Part shown: piece by piece, positions 1 to 56,574 of the stretch
Layout: the number at the start of each line of letters is the position of its first letter
How positions within the stretch are numbered: the first letter of the stretch is position 1
Sequence record: MT939492.1
Reading direction: 5' to 3' (one strand)
Length of the DNA stretch: 64,000 nucleotides
Notes under the pieces: model-generated
The model's input: the letters and a program-made list of their open reading frames with translations, nothing else
Database searches by the model: none
Told to the model about the DNA's origin: nothing
Made by a program: the position numbers and the translations under genes

Positions 1-13
1 TTTTTTTTTTGCT

Positions 14-1759
14 TTAAGCGTGCTCTTCCTGACGCACCCGTTCGCCGATCCGATGGATGTTGTCCAACACATCCGGGTTCTGGACCAGACCTCGATCCCG
101 ACGGAAGTTCTGCAGGAGCGTATCCATGCTCGGTGCGTTGTACAGGGTACGCACGATCTCCATGGCGTTGGTCGTACCGCCAGTGAGGTTGATGCCCTGT
201 GCACGCTGCACCTCTTCGGGAATATCGCGCATCATGCACAGCTCGCGCAACGTGGTTTCCTTGGAGATGTTCATCACCACTTCCAGCGTCGGGTAAGTAC
301 CGACGGCGTCGCAGTCTGCCACGTGAGTGAAGATTGCGGTGGGGTGATCCGGCATTTCCTCGATCAAGCACAGTCCATCGTCGACCAGGTACGAAGGCAG
401 TGTCACGATCCAATCGTTCATACCAAGCACGAACTTGTCGTTCTCATCCACCATGTCCTTACCGGTGGAGCCCATGATCTTGCCCTCGTTCTGAACGAAG
501 AAGTGCAAGTCGTCGCAGGTGCGCTTGGGCTGAGACGGGAACTTGGTGTACTCGGAGTGTTCAACCAGAACCGAGATCACTCGCTTCAGATCGTTGGTCT
601 CATCATCGAGCATCTCCATACCAACGCAGTCGAACACGTTGTAGATGCAATACTCGATCGGGTACTTGCTCTGCATGAACTTGTGCCAGTCCAGCCCCTT
701 CAAGTGATCAGCCACATCGAAGTTCAACTTACGCACACCCAGGTTCTTGTTGAGGATGTGATCGAGTCGATAGCTGGTCTCGTTGCCCTTGGTAACACGC
801 AGCTTCTTGTAGACGCACATGGCGTCAAGGAAGACGAAGGACGCAGGACATTCCATCTTGTGCCAACGATCGGCAGGATGGATGGGCTTCAGTGCGCCAG
901 TTGCCGTCTGCTGCTTGGCTCGACCTTCCACGTACTTGACGAAGCGGAAGGCGGGCGGGACACTCGGATCAGAAAGCACATCTGCAGCATTGATGCGTTC
1001 CTTGTCCAGAGCTGCCAGGATCTTTGGCAAGTCGAAGTTGATGTTCCAGATGGCGATGATGTCAGGCGAGATCTCGTGAGCACGCTCGAAGATCTTCTTG
1101 ATCAGCTCACCCGGTGTCTTACCGAAGTGAACCTGCAAGTTGATGTTGCGCGCCTTCTTGACCTCACCGAGATAGGTTTCCATCGCGGTCTGCAGAGCCT
1201 TCTCAGGCTCAGGGATGTGTTCGACGAACGAGTCCTTGACGCAGAGGATCACATTCTCTTTGCACGCAAGCGTGATCGAGACGATTTCCTCGGTGCCATG
1301 AACAACGTCCGTTTCAATGTCGAGCGTGGCCACCAGGTTGTCACTGATGAACTGCGGCCACTTCTTACGGTAGCCATACTTCAGCAACACCGGGGTGGTG
1401 ACGTCGGTGCCGTAGAGATACGGAGACATACCAGCAATCGGCATGCCGCCCTGAATCATGCCACGACCAAGTGCCTTGGACACACTGGCCAGCAGCTTGT
1501 GCTGAGGCGTGGTGTACTTCTGCAGCTTGTCAACGTCCTCCCACTCTTTCTTGTCAGTGTGGTTGCGGAAGTTCGGCTTGGTGACGTAGAAGTCACGCGG
1601 GTAGTCCTTGAAACGACGGATACGCGGAACACAGCGACCATCCTTCAGGTATACCTTCTCCTTCACGACCAAAAGGTCGAACGGAGCATCTTTCGGGTGG
1701 GCGTAAACGGCGTGTTTACACTCCAAGCCGATGATGTCTTCTTGCTTAATCTGGGTCAT
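14..1759 (-). CDS. Split family-B DNA polymerase subunit (3'-5' exonuclease domain plus polymerase motif A), phiKZ gp082-like
   Basis: ExoI LDIETD, ExoII WNINFD, ExoIII YNVFDC and a PolB motif-A-like DAVGTYP are present, with no motif B/C in the ORF. It is divergent from the virion gene cluster, as in phiKZ-like phages. Confidence 0.8.
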   Translation of the reverse strand: MTQIKQEDIIGLECKHAVYAHPKDAPFDLLVVKEKVYLKDGRCVPRIRRFKDYPRDFYVTKPNFRNHTDKKEWEDVDKLQKYTTPQHKLLASVSKALGRGMIQGGMPIAGMSPYLYGTDVTTPVLLKYGYRKKWPQFISDNLVATLDIETDVVHGTEEIVSITLACKENVILCVKDSFVEHIPEPEKALQTAMETYLGEVKKARNINLQVHFGKTPGELIKKIFERAHEISPDIIAIWNINFDLPKILAALDKERINAADVLSDPSVPPAFRFVKYVEGRAKQQTATGALKPIHPADRWHKMECPASFVFLDAMCVYKKLRVTKGNETSYRLDHILNKNLGVRKLNFDVADHLKGLDWHKFMQSKYPIEYCIYNVFDCVGMEMLDDETNDLKRVISVLVEHSEYTKFPSQPKRTCDDLHFFVQNEGKIMGSTGKDMVDENDKFVLGMNDWIVTLPSYLVDDGLCLIEEMPDHPTAIFTHVADCDAVGTYPTLEVVMNISKETTLRELCMMRDIPEEVQRAQGINLTGGTTNAMEIVRTLYNAPSMDTLLQNFRRDRGLVQNPDVLDNIHRIGERVRQEEHA

Positions 1760-13294: not shown

Positions 13295-13326
13295 AGCCGA
13301 GGCCCCTTCGGGGGCCTCGGCTTTAT
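13295..13326 (+). terminator. Hairpin terminator
   Basis: AGCCGAGGCCCC-TTCG-GGGGCCTCGGCT-TTAT. Confidence 0.75.
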
Positions 13327-48927: not shown

Positions 48928-49424
48928 TGTACGGCTTTGATCTGAACACAGAACTGGCTGGCATCTCCGACAACTCGATGTGGCAGCTCAAGAGCTGGAA
49001 GGAAGCAGGCATCGCCCTGCCCACCGGCACTGCCATGAAACGAGACCGTGGCGAGGAAGCCCTGCCCATGATCGCCGGTATCCGGGGCTTCGATCTTGTC
49101 CAGCGCAAGGCGCCGGCTGTCAAGGTCACCCTGATGGACGGCACCTCGTTCATCTGCGGCGAGTCGCAGGAGTTCTACGACGGTGATCGCTGGGTGAAGC
49201 CTGGTCCCGGCATTGTCCTGCGTGCTTACAGCAAGCACGGCGGTAGCATCCTGGACAGCTGGAACGTCGAAGTCGACACCGTCATTGACGTACCCGGTAT
49301 CGATCTGTACATGCCCAGCATCTACGGTCGCGACAACGTCGTACTGGCCAATCGGCTGGTTGCGCGTCTGCCCCTCCCTGACAACCTGAAGGGCGTGATT
49401 GCAGACCTCGCAGTAGGTGCCTGA
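48927..49424 (+). CDS. Stand-alone degenerate Hint (intein-like) domain protein
   Basis: Block pattern GFDLNT.L / V.VTL.DG.SF.C...QEFY.G..WV / LY......NVVLAN.LV; catalytic C1, block-B His and terminal Asn absent. Confidence 0.5.
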   Translation: MYGFDLNTELAGISDNSMWQLKSWKEAGIALPTGTAMKRDRGEEALPMIAGIRGFDLVQRKAPAVKVTLMDGTSFICGESQEFYDGDRWVKPGPGIVLRAYSKHGGSILDSWNVEVDTVIDVPGIDLYMPSIYGRDNVVLANRLVARLPLPDNLKGVIADLAVGA

Positions 49425-49489
49425 GTACCAGCTAATATATGACGCCGTACTCTGCTGCGGCGGATTTTAGCCCTCAAGGAATCCCTTTC

Positions 49490-51196
49490 ATGAAGACACT
49501 GCAGCAGCGTGCTGTACGTGACCAGCTGGAGCAGGCAGTTGCCTCCTCCGCGCAGCTGATCCACGTCGACCGCTCCGTCCGTCGTATCCTCCCGGCCATG
49601 GAGTCGGTGGGTGCACAGCTGAAGAAGAACGGCAAGTCCCCGTTCCTGTCCATCGCCCTGCGCGCTGGCGCCCGTGAACTGCTGCCCCTGAACAAGGCCC
49701 CAGCCATGGAGTCCTTCGAGGACACCGAAGGCCTGCAGCAGATCAACGACGACATCGTCGGCCGTCTGAACGAAATGGGCCCGCAGGTCGCCGTCGAGTC
49801 GGCCCGCGCCCAGAACGTGATCGCTGGCCTGAACTACCAGCTCTCCACTGAGTCCTTCGAGGACGAAGTCGCCGAGGGCATCCCGGTCGATGAAGACGGT
49901 GACGAAGACGGCAACGCCTACGACGACGGCGCTACCGAAGCCGATGCCATCGCCGCTTCCGAAGAAGAAGCAGCGCTGGTTGCCGCCGAGGAAGAAACCG
50001 AGGTCTCCACCGAAGACCTGATGGAAGAAGAAGCGGCCATCGTCGAAGCCGGCGAGCGCGACGTGGAAGCCGAAGCTGCGGCCGACACCCTGAACGACTT
50101 CCAGGGCGCGGTGGAAACCGTGAACGAAGAAGGCGGCTTCGCTGACGAAGCTGCGGTGGAAGAAGCCGAAGTGGCGCTGGAAGCGATCGCTGCGGTGTAC
50201 AACACCAAGCCGCTGAAGCTGACCTACGAGAAGGCCGAGAACGGCAAGCTGCTGGTCTCCACCGAAGCCATCGAGCAGATGCGCGGCAACCTGGTGGTCT
50301 CGCAGGAAAACATCGCCAAGCGTGCGGTGGCAGCCATCATCCGTCGTGACATGGCGTTCTACAATGCCATCGAAACCGGCGAGTTCATGCTGAACCAGCT
50401 GATGAAGAAGATCGCCACGACGCCGTCGCAGCGTGCACCGCGCAAGGCCGAAGTCGTCGTCAGCATGGCCTATCTGCACCGCAATGGCGAGCTGCCGACG
50501 GATCTGGCCGGTCACCTGATCGGTTACGCCGCCGTGGCCGAATACGTCAACGGTCGCTTCGTGGACGTGGCCAAGGACGCCTACCAGACCAACATCGGCC
50601 TGGTCAGTGGTCTGAACAAGATCACCGACGTCGAGTTCGCTCGTCGCTGGTCGGCCCTGCCGTCCAAGTGGCGCGATCCGCGCTCGGCCCTGACCGAAGC
50701 TCAGCTGCAGTACCCGATCCCGGGCGGTCGCCGCATGTTCGAAAACATGTCGACCACCTACGACGGCGCTGACCGCACCACGCAGTTCCTGGACAAGTTC
50801 GCCAGCTTCAACGTGCCCACCCGCATGTTCGAAGATTCCGACGGCACCCGCGTGGGTCGCATCCTCGTCCCGGTCCTGCCGGCCGAGAAGATCGGTGCGA
50901 TCACCCGTGCGTTCCTGAAGGTTGCCCAGGGCTTCAGCCGCAAGCGTTCGGCGATGGAATACCTGAAGACCTACGTGCTGGGTCCGGCCGGTGCTGCCAT
51001 CTTCAACGCCGCCGCGCACATGCTGTCCACCCCGGGCTTCCAGGGCGACCGCGACCAGCGCTACTACGTCAAGCGTGCGCTGAAGCTGAGCAGCGAGATG
51101 CGTTACCGTGTCACCACGGACAACACCCGCATCTTCAAGTTCATCCTGTTCGCCTACAACTCGATGGCGCGCAAGATGCTCAAGCAGTACCGCTGA
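49490..51196 (+). CDS. Internal head protein with long acidic propeptide (outlying member of the inner-head family)
   Basis: 568 aa from ATG 49490; AME x2, AVE, STE x3, ALE motifs; D/E-rich linker; strong codon bias. Confidence 0.7.
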   Translation: MKTLQQRAVRDQLEQAVASSAQLIHVDRSVRRILPAMESVGAQLKKNGKSPFLSIALRAGARELLPLNKAPAMESFEDTEGLQQINDDIVGRLNEMGPQVAVESARAQNVIAGLNYQLSTESFEDEVAEGIPVDEDGDEDGNAYDDGATEADAIAASEEEAALVAAEEETEVSTEDLMEEEAAIVEAGERDVEAEAAADTLNDFQGAVETVNEEGGFADEAAVEEAEVALEAIAAVYNTKPLKLTYEKAENGKLLVSTEAIEQMRGNLVVSQENIAKRAVAAIIRRDMAFYNAIETGEFMLNQLMKKIATTPSQRAPRKAEVVVSMAYLHRNGELPTDLAGHLIGYAAVAEYVNGRFVDVAKDAYQTNIGLVSGLNKITDVEFARRWSALPSKWRDPRSALTEAQLQYPIPGGRRMFENMSTTYDGADRTTQFLDKFASFNVPTRMFEDSDGTRVGRILVPVLPAEKIGAITRAFLKVAQGFSRKRSAMEYLKTYVLGPAGAAIFNAAAHMLSTPGFQGDRDQRYYVKRALKLSSEMRYRVTTDNTRIFKFILFAYNSMARKMLKQYR

Positions 51197-51211
51197 TTCG
51201 TCGGCGACATA

Positions 51212-51242
51212 CGGAGGGGACTTCGGTCCCCTCCGCTATGCC
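51212..51242. terminator. CATA-hairpin-TATGCC
   Basis: CGGAGGGGAC-TTCG-GTCCCCTCCG-C-TATGCC. Confidence 0.75.
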
Positions 51243-51311
51243 CTAAACGTCCCCAATCCTATGGTGAGGTAGAACTCGCCATAATCGACAGACCCGATAG
51301 GAACTCTGACA

Positions 51312-51581
51312 ATGGGGATGAACCACAAAGACCCCTTGGGTGATCTCGTGGAACAGCTGCGTAAGTATCAGCAGTCGCCGATCACGGCACTGAAGATGCT
51401 GCAGCCGGAGATCATCTACCTGGCCGAAGAAGTACTTATCGACGGGGAGGGTCAACCCAACCGCGATGCCATCGCAATGCTTCGCAAGCATGGCTTCGAC
51501 GTCGGTCCGCATGCGACCGAAAAAGGTGACTGGCTGCAAGGTGCAATCCAGACTCGTAATGGCTTGATCCTTTTCGGATGA
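51312..51581 (+). CDS. Hypothetical protein
   Basis: 89 aa ORF. Confidence 0.55.
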   Translation: MGMNHKDPLGDLVEQLRKYQQSPITALKMLQPEIIYLAEEVLIDGEGQPNRDAIAMLRKHGFDVGPHATEKGDWLQGAIQTRNGLILFG

Positions 51582-51591
51582 GGCTTGAGTC

Positions 51592-51711
51592 ATGGACGAA
51601 GTAACTGAAGAAAAAGAAGATGTGTCCGAGGCGCTGTTACAGGCGCAGCACGAGGCGAATTGCAGATTCGCTGACATGCTGACACAAGTCCTTACGGGCG
51701 AATGTGGCTGA
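51592..51711 (+). CDS. Possible 39-aa acidic peptide
   Basis: Manual translation MDEVTEEKEDVSEALLQAQHEANCRFADMLTQVLTGECG; fills the gap before a hairpin. Confidence 0.3.
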   Translation: MDEVTEEKEDVSEALLQAQHEANCRFADMLTQVLTGECG

Positions 51712-51717
51712 GCATTG

Positions 51718-51747
51718 GGGGAGGAGCTTCGGCTCTTCCCCTATGCC
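51718..51747 (+). terminator. Hairpin + TATGCC
   Basis: GGGGAGGAGC-TTCG-GCTCTTCCCC-TATGCC. Confidence 0.75.
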
Positions 51748-51760
51748 GTATCCCAGTGTA

Positions 51761-51778
51761 TTTCAAACCTACACTATC
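51761..51778 (+). promoter_or_regulatory. Candidate phage early promoter motif upstream of sspB
   Basis: TTTCAAACCTACACTATC. Confidence 0.55.
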
Positions 51779-51821
51779 GAACTGAGTAATACCTGACGCA
51801 TCAATCCAATCAATTGTAATC

Positions 51822-52343
51822 ATGGAGAAGTACGTGAACAAGCGCATTGAAACTGAAGTCACTCCCCTCATCGGTACTGCCGGGTTCGTCATCGAGGGTC
51901 TGTACAACTGGATCTTCGCCATGGGTGGCACGCCCCACATCTGCATCATGGCAGACTGGCCCGGTAACCAGCTCCCCAGTACCCTGCCGAAACAGCCGCA
52001 ACGGGTGGATCTCGGTGAGGATGGTGAAACGATCGATCTGCCGGTCATCGTCCTCAACATCGGTCAGCTCGCCACTCGCGGTCTGACGTTCTTCCGTGGC
52101 GAGGATTCGGACAACCCCGCCGATCCGGTAACCCATCTGCTGTTCTCCGGCCGTAGCAAAGGAGATCATTTCGATGGTACGGTCGATGTCAACTCGATCA
52201 TGGCTGTCTTCATGATCGAAGAAGCCGGTCGCGGCATGTCCCTCGGAAACAATCCCGAGCTGAATGACTTCATCAACAGCAAAGGCAAACCCACCCCGCC
52301 GGCCAAGCCATCGGGTAAGCCGACCTTGATGGTCGTCAAATAA
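51822..52343 (+). CDS. sspB: Stringent starvation protein B homologue (ClpXP adaptor)
   Basis: LYNWI..MGGTPHI, IVLNIG..A..GL, FSGR..G....V....I.AVF..E.GRG, and C-terminal KPTLMVVK align with SspB. Confidence 0.85.
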   Translation: MEKYVNKRIETEVTPLIGTAGFVIEGLYNWIFAMGGTPHICIMADWPGNQLPSTLPKQPQRVDLGEDGETIDLPVIVLNIGQLATRGLTFFRGEDSDNPADPVTHLLFSGRSKGDHFDGTVDVNSIMAVFMIEEAGRGMSLGNNPELNDFINSKGKPTPPAKPSGKPTLMVVK

Positions 52344-52352
52344 GGATCGAAC

Positions 52353-52784
52353 ATGGAAAGTCTGTACGACTTCCGCACGGTTGGGGACGTGGAGTTCCTC
52401 AACCTGATGGCAGAACGCGGCATCAACTCCAACCACCACGATGAACGTGGCATGCTCACTTACCTGCGTGAGTGCGAGGAGGGGGATCGTTACAACCTGA
52501 TCGAGCTTCGTTCTATCGTCCATGTTCCCACGGAGCAGGTCGTCGGACTGATCATGATCGTGTTGGAGGTTGACTGGGGCATCTACATCGCAGACTTTGC
52601 GACACGTGATGGCCACAGCTCTCCCGAACTCCTGCATGGCGTGGGCGATTACATTCGCCTCATGACCCCTTCGCATCGGCGTGTCTATGCCGACTACGAG
52701 CCGCACGAGCGACCCACGTGGGACGTTATCCAGATTCCCAGTCTGGAAGACTTCCGCCTTGGCGTTCAGCGAACCCAGTGGTGA
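52353..52784 (+). CDS. Hypothetical protein, possible GNAT-like fold
   Basis: QVVGLIMIV...IYIADFATRDGHSS..LL weakly resembles GNAT motifs. Confidence 0.4.
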   Translation: MESLYDFRTVGDVEFLNLMAERGINSNHHDERGMLTYLRECEEGDRYNLIELRSIVHVPTEQVVGLIMIVLEVDWGIYIADFATRDGHSSPELLHGVGDYIRLMTPSHRRVYADYEPHERPTWDVIQIPSLEDFRLGVQRTQW

Positions 52785-52787
52785 TTT

Positions 52788-53342
52788 ATGTTCAACCGTA
52801 GGAAAGACAACCGTTACACCCCCGATCCCAACGGGGAGAAGTACAGTTACCAAGAGAGCGTGTACGAGCAGTTCATCCACAATCACGAAGTGGAGTTGAA
52901 CAAGACCAAGCTGCTCCAGTCGATGGTCGAGGCTATGTACGAGAAGTTCAACCAGCGCCTTGGGGAAGACAACATCAATCCCAGGCACAACTCGTACAAG
53001 GCGGAAATGCTGTTGGCTGTTTGTAGTGCGCTCACGAGACAGTTCGGGCATCTCTTCGATCGGTCCAAGCCGCTCCACACGACCCATCCGTCCATCGTGC
53101 GGCTACCGGAAGCTCTCATGTGTAACGAGAGCGATGCAGCGCCGGTAGCTCGTCTGCTCTCTCAGCTGACCGGGTTCTTCGTTGAACACGGTCTGCCGCA
53201 TGGACATGGTTCCTCGCGTATGTTCTACATCCGCACGGACCTGCCCCGGTTGTTCAACGGTTACCACGGCCGCAACATGGCAAACCCCTTCGCACCACTT
53301 CGACCCCATGGCTGGGTCACCAGAGGAACTCCGCGTCAATGA
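52788..53342 (+). CDS. Hypothetical protein
   Basis: 184 aa ORF. Confidence 0.6.
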   Translation: MFNRRKDNRYTPDPNGEKYSYQESVYEQFIHNHEVELNKTKLLQSMVEAMYEKFNQRLGEDNINPRHNSYKAEMLLAVCSALTRQFGHLFDRSKPLHTTHPSIVRLPEALMCNESDAAPVARLLSQLTGFFVEHGLPHGHGSSRMFYIRTDLPRLFNGYHGRNMANPFAPLRPHGWVTRGTPRQ

Positions 53343-54160
53343 ACCAACCGCCCGCCATCGCCTGCAAGAACGGTATCCTGAACGATGTGGCCATTAAGGC
53401 CCTGTGCACGGAGCCGACCTTCGATCAGTTCTACCTCAAGGTCAAGACCGCGTACCTTGCCTCGTACGGCGTCTACGATGTCAGCAATACGGCGCTCTCG
53501 GAGAGCTCGGAGAATATCGTCCTCGACGAAGTGAGGCGGCTCAATGAAAGCTGGAAGCCGATGATCGCACCGTTCGAACCTAAGCAGGTTCGTTACGTCG
53601 ATGCCCGCGCCTTCGAGCAGAGCAAGATCCGCGATCATCTGGCCGTCGTGCAAGAAGCTCAGCATCGCGTCATCTCCTACGGAACCACCAGCTACGGCTA
53701 CGACGTGACGCTTGCCGAAGAAGGCTTCAAGATCTTCTCCGGTCTGAACGTCACCGAGATCGATCCGATGGACTTTGACGACAAGTGTCTCATTGATGCC
53801 CAGGTGAAGATCAACCCGAAGAACGGCCTGCGCTACATCCTCCTGCCGCCGCACAGCTACGGCCTGGGCGTGACGCGTGAGTACTTCCACATGCCGCGTG
53901 ACGTGGTGGCACTGTGCATCGGTAAGAGCACCTACGCTCGCGCGGGCGTTCTGATCAATGCCACTCCGATCGAACCTGGCTTCGTGGGAAATGTAGTGAT
54001 CGAAGTGGGTAACCTGACCCCGATCCCGGCGCGCGTTTATCTCAACACCGGTATCGCGCAGTTCCTGTTCTTCCGTGGCGAGGAAGAGTGCGAAATCAGC
54101 TACGCCGATCGTGATGGCAAGTACATGCGCCAGACCGGCGTGCAGCTGCCGCTGATCTAA
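53339..54160 (+). CDS. dcd: dCTP deaminase
   Basis: MIAPFEP.QVR, ISYGTTSYGYDV, GKSTYARAG, TPIEPGF.G...IE, GIAQ.LF, YADR.GKY..Q. Confidence 0.93.
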   Translation: MNQPPAIACKNGILNDVAIKALCTEPTFDQFYLKVKTAYLASYGVYDVSNTALSESSENIVLDEVRRLNESWKPMIAPFEPKQVRYVDARAFEQSKIRDHLAVVQEAQHRVISYGTTSYGYDVTLAEEGFKIFSGLNVTEIDPMDFDDKCLIDAQVKINPKNGLRYILLPPHSYGLGVTREYFHMPRDVVALCIGKSTYARAGVLINATPIEPGFVGNVVIEVGNLTPIPARVYLNTGIAQFLFFRGEEECEISYADRDGKYMRQTGVQLPLI

Positions 54161-54166
54161 TCAGTA

Positions 54167-54197
54167 GTCGGAGGGGGGTAACCTCTCCGACTATGCC
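54167..54197 (+). terminator. Hairpin + TATGCC
   Basis: GTCGGAGGGG-GGTAA-CCTCTCCGAC-TATGCC. Confidence 0.7.
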
Positions 54198-54211
54198 TTC
54201 TGGAGAACTAG

Positions 54212-54487
54212 ATGGATAAGGAAGACGTTAAGAAGTGGCTGATCTTGGGTTGCGTAGGCCTGATCATTCTCGCAGTGTCCTACGTGGTAAACAAAACACC
54301 TGATACAAGGAGCGAAGCTACTCTGCTGGAAAACATGGGATGCAAACCCACTGGTCCATGGACTACCAAGTACATTCAGGACAAAGCAGCGCCGGATGAT
54401 AAGTACTCCGTCGCCCCCAAACAAATCACCTTCATCGAGTACACCTGCCCCAGTGGCAATGGTGTCAGGATAAGTCATGACCGATAA
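54212..54487 (+). CDS. Small membrane-anchored protein with two Cys (family member 3)
   Basis: N-terminal TM; GCKPT ... EYTCPSG. Confidence 0.65.
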   Translation: MDKEDVKKWLILGCVGLIILAVSYVVNKTPDTRSEATLLENMGCKPTGPWTTKYIQDKAAPDDKYSVAPKQITFIEYTCPSGNGVRISHDR

Positions 54488-54872
54488 CAACCCGAAGTCA
54501 CCCAACCTCACGGCTGAAGAAAAGGAGCGTGTCCTCCAGCGAGCCAGAAACGATCCGAAGTTCTTCATCGAGAACATCCTGAAGGACGATCCGGACAAGG
54601 CCAACTTGCTGATGAACTCGGCCAGGGTCTTGGGTATCGCTGACAAGATCGAAGACCTGCCCATCGGTCCTGTCATCTTCATGCCGAGGATGACGATTCC
54701 TCGTCACACGCATCGCGGGGTTCTTCTCCAAGCTATTCAGCGAAACCTCGCCATGCGTGAGGTTGTGACCGAACACCTCCGCACGTTCATGGCACCTGCC
54801 CTGAAAGCCTACAAGGCTCGCGACAAGATCCGTGCCCGTCGTCGTATCAAGCGTCGCGGTCGGAAGTACTAA
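54477..54872 (+). CDS. Hypothetical protein with Arg-rich C-terminus
   Basis: 131 aa ORF. Confidence 0.6.
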   Translation: MTDNNPKSPNLTAEEKERVLQRARNDPKFFIENILKDDPDKANLLMNSARVLGIADKIEDLPIGPVIFMPRMTIPRHTHRGVLLQAIQRNLAMREVVTEHLRTFMAPALKAYKARDKIRARRRIKRRGRKY

Positions 54873-54940
54873 CCCGTAACAAGTTAATCGTCGCCGTACT
54901 CACGTACCATCACGACTAATCACAAGAGAACCGAAACACC

Positions 54941-55474
54941 ATGGCAAGTATCAATGTTGAGAAGTATGCCCCCGAAGACGATTGCTTCGAGCTGTTCGAT
55001 GCTGGCGAGGATATCTCCCTGCCGGTTATCTACGACATGCTGCGCAACCGTTTTCCAGCGCTTCGCTTCTACGCAGAAGACCGTGACATCGCTTCGCTGA
55101 TCGACGGAAGCATCACGGTGGAGCTGTTCCCCAATTCCGACCGCAAGACGATCAGGCTCAAGCTCAACACCCAGAAGCAGTACACCCTTAACAACGAGAT
55201 CTGTTTCGATGTGTTGCCGCAGGCTGGCCGTCTTGTCATCGACATGATGCTGGCGATCATCAAGCGCGCAGGTCGCCCCGCAGAAACCCTGGACACCGAA
55301 CTGGACACCTTCAAGCGCCATATCGGCCGAGTGTTTGGTGGTATGCAGGTGAACGTGCACTACATCAAGCTGAAAGAGAACCCGCTGCTCAACAGCTGGG
55401 TCATGCTGCTTAGCTTTGAAGGCCAGTACGCTCAGATCGTGCTGCCGACCAACTATTACGAAAAGAACGCCTAA
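54941..55474 (+). CDS. Hypothetical protein
   Basis: 177 aa ORF. Confidence 0.65.
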   Translation: MASINVEKYAPEDDCFELFDAGEDISLPVIYDMLRNRFPALRFYAEDRDIASLIDGSITVELFPNSDRKTIRLKLNTQKQYTLNNEICFDVLPQAGRLVIDMMLAIIKRAGRPAETLDTELDTFKRHIGRVFGGMQVNVHYIKLKENPLLNSWVMLLSFEGQYAQIVLPTNYYEKNA

Positions 55475-55486
55475 GGGAGAAGTACC

Positions 55487-55942
55487 GTGGAAGTTAAGCA
55501 GTACAAAGCACGTTTGCTGAAGTTCGATGAAAACCGCGTCAGTAAGGAAGTCTTCAAAGATTTCTTTGAGGACGAGATCGGCCGTTCTTTCCGTGAACGA
55601 CTGGAGAACTCACTGATTCGTGGTGAGTTTGGCTCGCCGGTGATCTTGCCGGCCATGTCCATGTCCGAGCGCATCAACCGCGTGTCCCACCTCAACGAAC
55701 TGTCCATCTGTCTTGCGGTGGTCAGCCACGAGGTTCGCGACGACGGCCTCTACGGTATCATCCAGCCGGTGGGTCCGATGGGTCGCGCAATGATGGAGCA
55801 CCTGGACAGCCGCCCTGAAGATACGGCGGTATTGTCCATGCGGCATCTGGGCCGGACGGAGTTTGTCGAAGGCGCCGAACAGCCAAGGGTCACCAAGCTT
55901 CAACGCATCATTGCGTTCGATCTTACCAACGAGTTCGTCTAA
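55487..55942 (+). CDS. Probable inactive paralogue of prohead core protease (T4 gp21/phiKZ gp175 fold)
   Basis: RGEFGSP, I.PVGPMG, LSMRHLG, IIAFDL.NE follow the protease motif order with catalytic His/Ser substituted. Confidence 0.55.
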   Translation: MEVKQYKARLLKFDENRVSKEVFKDFFEDEIGRSFRERLENSLIRGEFGSPVILPAMSMSERINRVSHLNELSICLAVVSHEVRDDGLYGIIQPVGPMGRAMMEHLDSRPEDTAVLSMRHLGRTEFVEGAEQPRVTKLQRIIAFDLTNEFV

Positions 55943-55962
55943 GTTTAACGAGAGCAGCCGAG

Positions 55963-56574
55963 ATGGCATCCAAGAAGAAGAACAAAGTTCAGCGTCACGT
56001 CGTTGTTAACTCCGCAAGTTGGATGGCGGATCTGCCGATGGATATCCTCTGGCAGCAGGAGCAGTTCATCAAGACTTTGATGTCTGAGAAACTGCCGATG
56101 TGGTTTGCGCCGTTGTTCATGCGCTTTGCCGAACACCTGTATCAGCCGACCCGTTATGCGACTCATGTCTACCATGGGGTGCGTACGCCGGGTCACCGGC
56201 GGTGGTTCCTGAGTCTGCACGCTTTGGGTTCTGTAGACGTGCTGAAGGTGCTCGATGTCGCTGTCATCAACACGATGGGGGAAATGCCACCCAAGCATGA
56301 GCGGGCGATTGTATATAAGCCCGATGGTCCGTACGAGCCTTTCGCGGAAGAGTTCCGCCTTTGGTCGCGTACTGCCGGACCCGCTCGTACTGGGTGGTAC
56401 AGCTTTGATGCTAGCGTAAGGCGTTTGCTGTGCGCACTGTACCGCAGTGGAGTTGAGATGTGGCATGAGCCGAGCGAGGCAGAGGGTTCGTTCACTGTGT
56501 GGATGTACCACGATCGCTCATTGGTGCGTTTGGACTTCCGTTCCCAGACTTGGCAGGTTTGGGGAAGTCATTGA
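55963..56574 (+). CDS. Hypothetical protein (Trp-rich)
   Basis: 203 aa ORF. Confidence 0.6.
   Translation: MASKKKNKVQRHVVVNSASWMADLPMDILWQQEQFIKTLMSEKLPMWFAPLFMRFAEHLYQPTRYATHVYHGVRTPGHRRWFLSLHALGSVDVLKVLDVAVINTMGEMPPKHERAIVYKPDGPYEPFAEEFRLWSRTAGPARTGWYSFDASVRRLLCALYRSGVEMWHEPSEAEGSFTVWMYHDRSLVRLDFRSQTWQVWGSH

Follow-up and report, generated by a model that had tools for sequence, protein, structure and literature searches.

A divergent SspB homologue with a conserved ClpX-docking-type tail in Xoo-sp14, a jumbo phage of Xanthomonas

The gene Xoosp14_69 of Xanthomonas phage Xoo-sp14 encodes a divergent but true homologue of the ClpXP adaptor SspB, lying outside the curated equivalog definitions of the family. 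By sequence comparison and by analogy with the bacterial adaptors, we consider it somewhat probable that the protein is a working adaptor, tethering cargo to host ClpXP in the cytoplasm. Xoo-sp14 is a 232,104-bp jumbo phage infecting X. oryzae pv. oryzae (PMC7686423) and is counted among the chimalliviruses, that is, the nucleus-forming phages (bioRxiv 10.1101/2024.03.21.585822); it groups with LucasX, its closest genomic relative (PMC9009655). We analysed a stretch of 64,000 nt of its sequence record MT939492.1, hereafter the window; bases 49000-56000 agree with that record at 100% identity and without any shift in coordinates. GenBank lists the gene as Xoosp14_69 / QNR51760.1, 'ClpXP protease specificity-enhancing factor'. 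Its SspB identity is therefore already public, and the original prediction, which named it SspB from the sequence alone, repeats this annotation. The features described below are collected in Table 1.

Table 1. Features of the sspB-like gene, its product and the surrounding transcription unit (residues numbered in the 169-aa protein)
Feature	Coordinates	Residues	Strand	Basis or remark
Intrinsic-terminator-like element closing the upstream unit	51717..51749		+	GC hairpin with TTCG loop, 51717-51742; overlaps TATGCCGT box, 51742-51749
Recurrent promoter-like motif	51761..51786		+	TTTCA box, AT-rich core 51769-51778, then TGAG
Shine-Dalgarno GGAG	51824..51827		+	6 nt 5' of GTG; kept in relatives
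sspB-like gene Xoosp14_69	51834..52343	169 aa from GTG	+	homology, fold, relatives, GenBank
Disordered N-terminus		1-13		AF2 model
SspB-fold substrate-binding domain	51873..52253	14-140	+	AF2, Foldseek; helix 15-29, then beta sandwich
Clade-specific insertion 1	51996..52040	about 55-69	+	15-residue gap opposite all bacterial SspBs
Clade-specific insertion 2	52101..52133	90-100	+	acidic loop; 11-residue gap opposite all bacterial SspBs
Short linker	52254..52313	141-160	+	predicted short helix 141-149; sequence and length vary within the clade
C-terminal ClpX-docking-type (XB-like) tail	52314..52340	161-169	+	alignment with bacterial SspBs
Downstream genes g70, g71 and g72 (dCTP deaminase)	52353..54160 (52353-52784, 52788-53342, 53339-54160)		+	tight packing
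Terminator-like hairpin with TATGCC at the end of the putative unit from SspB to dCTP deaminase	54164..54197		+	RNA fold

The open reading frame described originally, 51822..52343 on the plus strand, is present; it would encode 173 aa counted from its ATG and ends in KPTLMVVK, and the SspB landmarks quoted for it can be found (LYNW...TPH, F-S-G-R-S-K-G and E-A-G-R-G). Its frame and stop stand, but its start should probably be moved. The true start is probably the GTG at 51834 rather than the ATG at 51822, since the gene starts at the position of this GTG in all four metagenomic relatives (as in GenBank), one relative has ACG in place of the ATG, and a GGAG sequence lies 6 nt upstream of the GTG.

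Homology to SspB extends over the whole protein. When the phage clade was compared with 13 bacterial SspBs using hhalign, the two aligned over 135 columns to the last residue, with a probability of 99.8% and an E value of 1.2e-27. All eight NCBIfam matches were to SspB models (8/8), the best being NF008764 (E 9.6e-10, profile positions 9-143 of 143). The claim of an alignment with SspB along the full length is thus borne out. The profile search proposed with it gave a mixed answer: the NCBIfam SspB models were found, but the NF008764 score was 38.5 bits against a curated cutoff of 191, the protein falls under every curated NCBIfam SspB cutoff, and it had no Pfam match at E up to 1, thus not reaching the gathering threshold of PF04386. 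Because the scores are below the cutoffs, yet the best E value is 9.6e-10 over a nearly full-length match and only SspB models respond, we call the protein a homologue and not a certified equivalog. None of the five members of the phage clade matched Pfam even at E up to 10, and PHROGs gave no match for the Xoo-sp14 protein. The miss in Pfam is a matter of detection and not a biological feature, as the PF04386 model misses this diverged clade. Searching PDB sequences with phmmer returned four matches, all SspB and all weak (E 0.18-1.3), which cover the N-terminal core and, separately, the tail; a profile built from the five phage sequences had no match among PDB sequences. Against 1.84 billion representative proteins the same five-sequence profile recovered small proteins, and all nine that were scanned are Pfam SspB members (E 1e-18 to 4e-39). 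Among the other matches, P0005 was rejected as an SspB relative, being a HYR-repeat protein in which the match is a 25-residue stretch repeated many times; P0008 and P0017, which are longer and were left unscanned, show a similar match pattern and were treated as spurious.

The predicted fold leads to the same family. The AF2 model of the Xoo-sp14 protein has a pLDDT of 76.4 (79-93 in the core) and a pTM of 0.69. In a Foldseek search of the PDB with this model, ranks 1-19 were all SspB structures (from E. coli, H. influenzae, Caulobacter and Agrobacterium), followed by noise, with a best E value of 1.3e-7 and target-normalised TM-scores of 0.74-0.84 to the E. coli and H. influenzae proteins. 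The fold part of the structure prediction suggested earlier therefore came out as SspB. The protein shares with bacterial SspB (PF04386; PRK11798 models; PDB 1OX9, 1OU8, 1YFN and 8ET3) both the fold and the order of modules, namely an N-terminal helix, a beta domain, a flexible linker and a terminal L-x-V-V-K tail. Unlike them, it is virus-encoded, is only ~30-36% identical in sequence, and carries two insertions and a set of radical substitutions.

The two core insertions named in the original prediction (GEDGETIDL and RGEDSDNPADP) correspond to clean gaps of 15 and 11 residues in the bacterial proteins, and insertion 1 is predicted by AF2 to lengthen a beta hairpin (strands 54-59 and 66-75). 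To describe the remaining core, we took the 40 positions at which at least 10 of the 13 bacterial SspBs agree. At these positions the phage protein has the identical residue in 24 cases and a residue of the same class in 30, and it retains 9 of the 11 positions that are invariant in all 13. The two exceptions are F to S (108) and P to D (118). Both are fixed within the clade, and so are R to E (21), N to M (30) and V to N (45); all these radically changed sites are invariant or nearly so in bacterial SspBs. The fixed radical changes, together with the two insertions, support the earlier description of the substrate-binding core as divergent. Since high conservation in SspB is confined to the dimer interface and the ssrA groove (PMC9963277), some of the radical changes probably touch one or the other of these surfaces. 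Given that these changes fall at positions conserved in bacteria, canonical cargo recognition may be altered or lost in the phage clade.

In the tail, all six conserved positions are kept. The Xoo-sp14 tail aligns with the C-terminal end of E. coli SspB. Every one of the 18 aligned sequences has L165 and K169, and K/R162, P163, V167 and V168 are the residues of the bacterial majority. The ClpX-docking-type tail is therefore intact, as had been predicted, and its L-x-V-V-K is conserved at the level of sequence. The linker that precedes it has only 15-22% amino-acid identity in distant pairs.

Selection on the gene was examined among the relatives. Comparison with the closest relative (dS 0.40) gives a dN/dS ratio of 0.09, and comparison with the distant ones 0.24-0.27. 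The core segments 14-48 and 101-140 show values of 0.05-0.18; those of segment 69-87 scatter more, reaching 0.74 in distant pairs. The highest rates (0.33-0.90) are those of the linker and of insertion 1, the part of the domain that evolves fastest. The tail was conserved in this comparison as well. Such purifying selection indicates a functional gene in which the core and tail modules are both maintained. Among distant relatives SspB has 57-63% amino-acid identity and its neighbours at the locus range from 25% to 98%; its divergence is thus middling, and we rejected the idea of SspB as an exceptional arms-race outlier.

These data bear on two other readings of the gene. In the first, the protein would be a competitor or decoy, whose tail occupies the N-domains of host ClpX without productive delivery, so that host SspB and the adaptors or substrates depending on the N-domain are blocked and phage proteins are protected or host stress responses frozen. 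The tail is indeed the best-conserved short segment, the linker is short, and several core positions conserved in bacterial SspBs are radically changed. However, a tail alone would suffice for this purpose, yet two large core segments evolve at dN/dS 0.05-0.18 and most of the family-conserved positions are retained; genuine bacterial SspBs of 124-130 aa also have linkers just as short. Strong purifying selection acts on the folded core and the tail alike, which argues against a competitor made up of its tail alone, and we judge the competitor reading unlikely. In the second, the gene, derived from a host, would be hitch-hiking or in decay and play no part in infection, which would fit the missing PHROG and Pfam matches and neighbouring genes of unknown function. 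Against it stand the dN/dS of 0.09, a reading frame kept intact across five diverged phages, in which synteny is conserved too, and the distance to the nearest cellular relatives, which are only ~30-36% identical and thus speak against a recent capture. The selection analysis effectively refutes this second reading, to which we give almost no credence.

The element upstream of the gene contains a stable GC hairpin (51717-51742; RNA fold -26.3 kcal/mol, z -4.0, 0 of 200 shuffles equally stable), and another lies behind the dCTP deaminase gene (54164-54194; -23.3 kcal/mol, z -5.3, again 0/200). The terminator of phage phiKZ has been mapped experimentally as a hairpin followed by TTAT-KYYGT (PMC10914365). 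The hairpins followed by TATGCCGT at the 51717 site and by TATGCC at the 54164 site match this type of motif, so both elements are putative phiKZ-type terminators. In ~18 of the 39 intergenic regions of the window we saw a GC hairpin, in many cases having a TTCG loop, with (T)TATGCC behind it, for example at 13295, 14670, 22503, 29122, 30620, 37522, 38945, 42112, 45722, 51212, 51717, 54164, 59407 and 61020. This combination looks like a phiKZ-type terminator signature that would serve as genome punctuation. A T-rich run ending in GTCG, GTCC or GGC forms a second class of intergenic motif and occurs just after some of the terminators (~15268, 30655, 37549, 44510 and 59440, plus strand); it may represent another class of promoter and is absent upstream of SspB.

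Between the first terminator-like element and the gene lies the promoter-like motif at 51761. Exact k-mer counting missed this degenerate motif, which was revealed by inspection of the intergenic regions; a scan for the sigma-70 consensus gave no match at 51761. The pattern CTAYAYYAYCNNNNKGAG, which was derived partly from the sites it then matches, has 6 matches with at most one mismatch in the window against 0.20 expected, all of them on the plus strand and intergenic. Genome-wide there are 11 such matches, all on the plus strand, 10 of them intergenic and 7 with a TTT[CG]A box just upstream. Because of the way the pattern was derived, independent support for the motif comes from its strand, its intergenic placement and its conservation in relatives. 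Three relatives, with SspB proteins 57-92% identical, carry the 51761 motif almost unchanged, although conservation between the genes is not special here, as the whole block upstream of SspB is 86-97% identical. The motif, being recurrent, strand-specific and intergenic, was correctly identified as real, and SspB is the first gene after it. Plus-strand intergenic sites were noted at 1793, 14737, 20303, 30687, 39008, 51769 and 59817, and elsewhere in the genome at 70971, 182614 and 227283; they precede gene 2, gene 12, a phosphatase/DHFR cluster, genes 37 and 50, SspB and a cell wall hydrolase gene, among others.

In jumbo phages that encode RNA polymerases, early promoters are marked by an AT-rich motif near -10 that bioinformatic methods can detect, whereas late promoters share only TATG (PMC7598289). 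The 51761 motif fits the description of a phage-specific, conserved AT-rich motif of ~10 nt that recurs upstream of operons. By this rule, from which the class assignment derives, it is probably of the early class and read by the virion RNA polymerase. We found no transcriptome for Xoo-sp14, and the deposited reads are of genomic DNA. A riboswitch or small RNA in the leader was considered and rejected, as the leader is unstructured (z +1.1) and has no Rfam match.

SspB is followed by g70, g71 and the dCTP deaminase gene g72 (confirmed by Pfam and PHROGs) with gaps of 9 nt and 3 nt and then an overlap of 4 nt, and no terminator lies between them; the four genes are probably co-transcribed as one unit. 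All relatives share one gene order, which runs from a 568-aa gene through an 89-aa gene, a 39-aa ORF, SspB, a 143-aa gene and a 184-aa gene to the dCTP deaminase. An AF2 single-sequence model of g70 was unusable (pLDDT 37).

Several other reading frames were noted at the locus. The 89-aa gene, Xoosp14_68 (51312-51581, plus strand), has 96-100% identity between phages in which the genes around it reach only 25-86%; no other gene of the 12-kb locus is conserved so well. The 39-aa ORF (51592-51711, plus strand), located between g68 and the terminator, is unannotated in Xoo-sp14 and called syntenically in all relatives with 85-97% amino-acid identity. Neither of the two has a Pfam or PHROG match. 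Two further plus-strand ORFs, 54212-54487 (91 aa) and 55963-56574 (203 aa), fall inside stretches of 316 and 713 nt without GenBank annotation, and genes of the same lengths are called at syntenic places in relatives. In the P0003 lineage (~234 kb) an extra 102-aa gene (L002/L003, 5693-6001) abuts the SspB start, replacing the intergenic region with terminator and promoter motif found in Xoo-sp14 and the other relatives. A 425-aa antisense ORF (51810-53087, minus strand) over SspB, g70 and g71 was treated as non-coding and typical of high-GC DNA, because the plus-strand genes have homologues and conserved synteny.

SspB homologues are widespread among jumbo phages. A tblastn search with a bacterial SspB query found them in 35 phage records, mostly of jumbo phages, including the Erwinia RAY group, the Ralstonia FLC phages, Xanthomonas RTH11 and LucasX, and Vibrio phages, and also in pf16, and many of these homologues are already named SspB-like; fold matches in BFVD add Noxifer, Phabio, PA7, 201phi2-1, PhiPA3, Psa21 and others. 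A tblastn search of 50,697 phage records with the Xoo-sp14 protein retrieved only that protein, and a scan of IMG/VR yielded no new members of its clade. In a genome scan with P0006 as the query, Marinobacter and Oleiphilaceae were matched and no Xanthomonas was. The proteins of the Xoo-sp14 clade, RAY gp39, pEa_SNUABM_54, FLC1-1B gp93 and pf16 gp18 all keep L-x-[VI]-V-K at their end, whereas LucasX and RTH11 lack this ending and Vibrio D69 has a divergent one. The Xoo-sp14 clade is 29-36% identical to bacterial SspBs and only 16-23% identical to the other jumbo-phage SspBs, that of LucasX included. As the clade is nearer to bacterial SspBs than to those of other jumbo phages, the phage SspBs do not appear to form a single lineage.

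Erwinia phage RAY gp039, a cytoplasmic protein (bioRxiv 10.1101/2023.02.24.529968), is likewise an SspB homologue of a nucleus-forming jumbo phage with an L-x-V-V-K tail; unlike the Xoo-sp14 protein, to which it is 21% identical, it is without the two insertions and has a different genomic context. Pseudomonas phage pf16 gp18 (PMC5587285) is also a phage-encoded SspB with a docking-type tail, but pf16 belongs to the T4-like phages and not to the chimalliviruses. The pf16 protein stands near bacterial SspBs (54% identity to P0016), suggesting that it was captured recently; the Xoo-sp14 clade, in contrast, has diverged deeply. The Xanthomonas jumbo phages LucasX and RTH11 encode proteins with an SspB-related domain too, which differ from that of Xoo-sp14 in their low identity to it (21-23%), their different locus and the missing L-x-V-V-K ending. 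They look like tail-less variants, whereas the Xoo-sp14 protein keeps its tail. Both LUCX_196 (L090, 1453-2019), which is annotated only as hypothetical, and the RTH11 protein (L091, 1462-2001) have a large insertion in the C-terminal half.

Small phage proteins that redirect or block host AAA+ proteases, altering what such a protease degrades, offer a functional parallel: SPO1 Gp53 acts on ClpCP, and T4 PinA and T7 Gp4.5 act on Lon. T5 Gp00X has been reported to induce proteolysis of RpoS by ClpXP independently of RssB (meeting report PMC11806420). Unlike these four factors, which are unrelated to it in sequence and fold, the Xoo-sp14 protein is a homologue of a host adaptor. Published phage SspBs are pf16 gp18 (by modelling only; PMC5587285) and RAY gp039 (bioRxiv 10.1101/2023.02.24.529968), and our literature search found no functional study and no binding or degradation data for any phage SspB. 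The 'SspB' of defence reviews belongs to the unrelated SspBCDE phosphorothioation system.

In bacterial SspB, the core and the tail are separable modules (PMC8138137), and replacing the last eight residues of the P. aeruginosa protein with alanine weakens ClpX binding (PMC13251409). The core-plus-tail adaptor mechanism is documented for the E. coli and P. aeruginosa proteins (PMC9963277, PMC8138137, PMC13251409). The Xoo-sp14 genome has no annotated ClpX, ClpP or tmRNA (the annotation is sparse, with ~190 hypothetical proteins), and no tmRNA was found within the window; the partner ClpXP would thus be that of the host. Selection on both modules and the lack of these annotated phage partners together favour a working adaptor to host ClpXP. 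In such a mechanism the phage would make a divergent SspB-type adaptor in the host cytoplasm, a location suggested by analogy with RAY gp039. Its SspB-fold domain, probably dimeric through the N-terminal helix, would bind a cargo, and beyond the short flexible linker the L-x-V-V-K tail would dock on the zinc-binding N-domain of host ClpX, so that the tethered cargo would be degraded faster by host ClpXP. The gene would head its four-gene unit, framed by two putative phiKZ-type terminators, behind a promoter-like motif probably of the early class.

As for the cargo, the evidence gives about the same likelihood to canonical ssrA-type tags as to a re-specified target. Fuller and rather unlikely as a whole is the scenario in which the clade kept the ClpX-docking tail and re-specified the cargo surface, so that early in infection host ClpXP would be directed against a particular target, either a regulator of the host or a defence protein in the cytoplasm; the fast-evolving hairpin of insertion 1 and the fixed radical substitutions may be the re-specifying elements. 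Alternatively, the protein could sequester a regulator without involving ClpX, by binding a fragment of an RseA/MucA-type anti-sigma factor in competition with host SspB and damping the envelope-stress response. Both RseA and the AlgU-MucA complex are known binding partners of SspB (PMC8138137, PMC13251409), and a role of this kind has been proposed from docking models for pf16 gp18 (PMC5587285). That proposal is modelling only, and sequestration would give no reason to conserve a ClpX-docking tail, which is kept throughout the clade; we hold this alternative to be very improbable.

SspB homologues are common in jumbo phages and published, the Xoo-sp14 gene was already annotated, and there is little novelty in its identification. 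The terminators, the promoter-like motif and the unannotated ORFs modestly improve the annotation of Xoo-sp14. The existence of phage-encoded versions of such an adaptor suggests cytoplasmic tuning of host proteolysis by jumbo phages, whose DNA meanwhile lies within the phage nucleus. By separating a conserved docking tail from a variable cargo-side insertion, the Xoo-sp14 clade offers a reasonable place to ask what such adaptors deliver.
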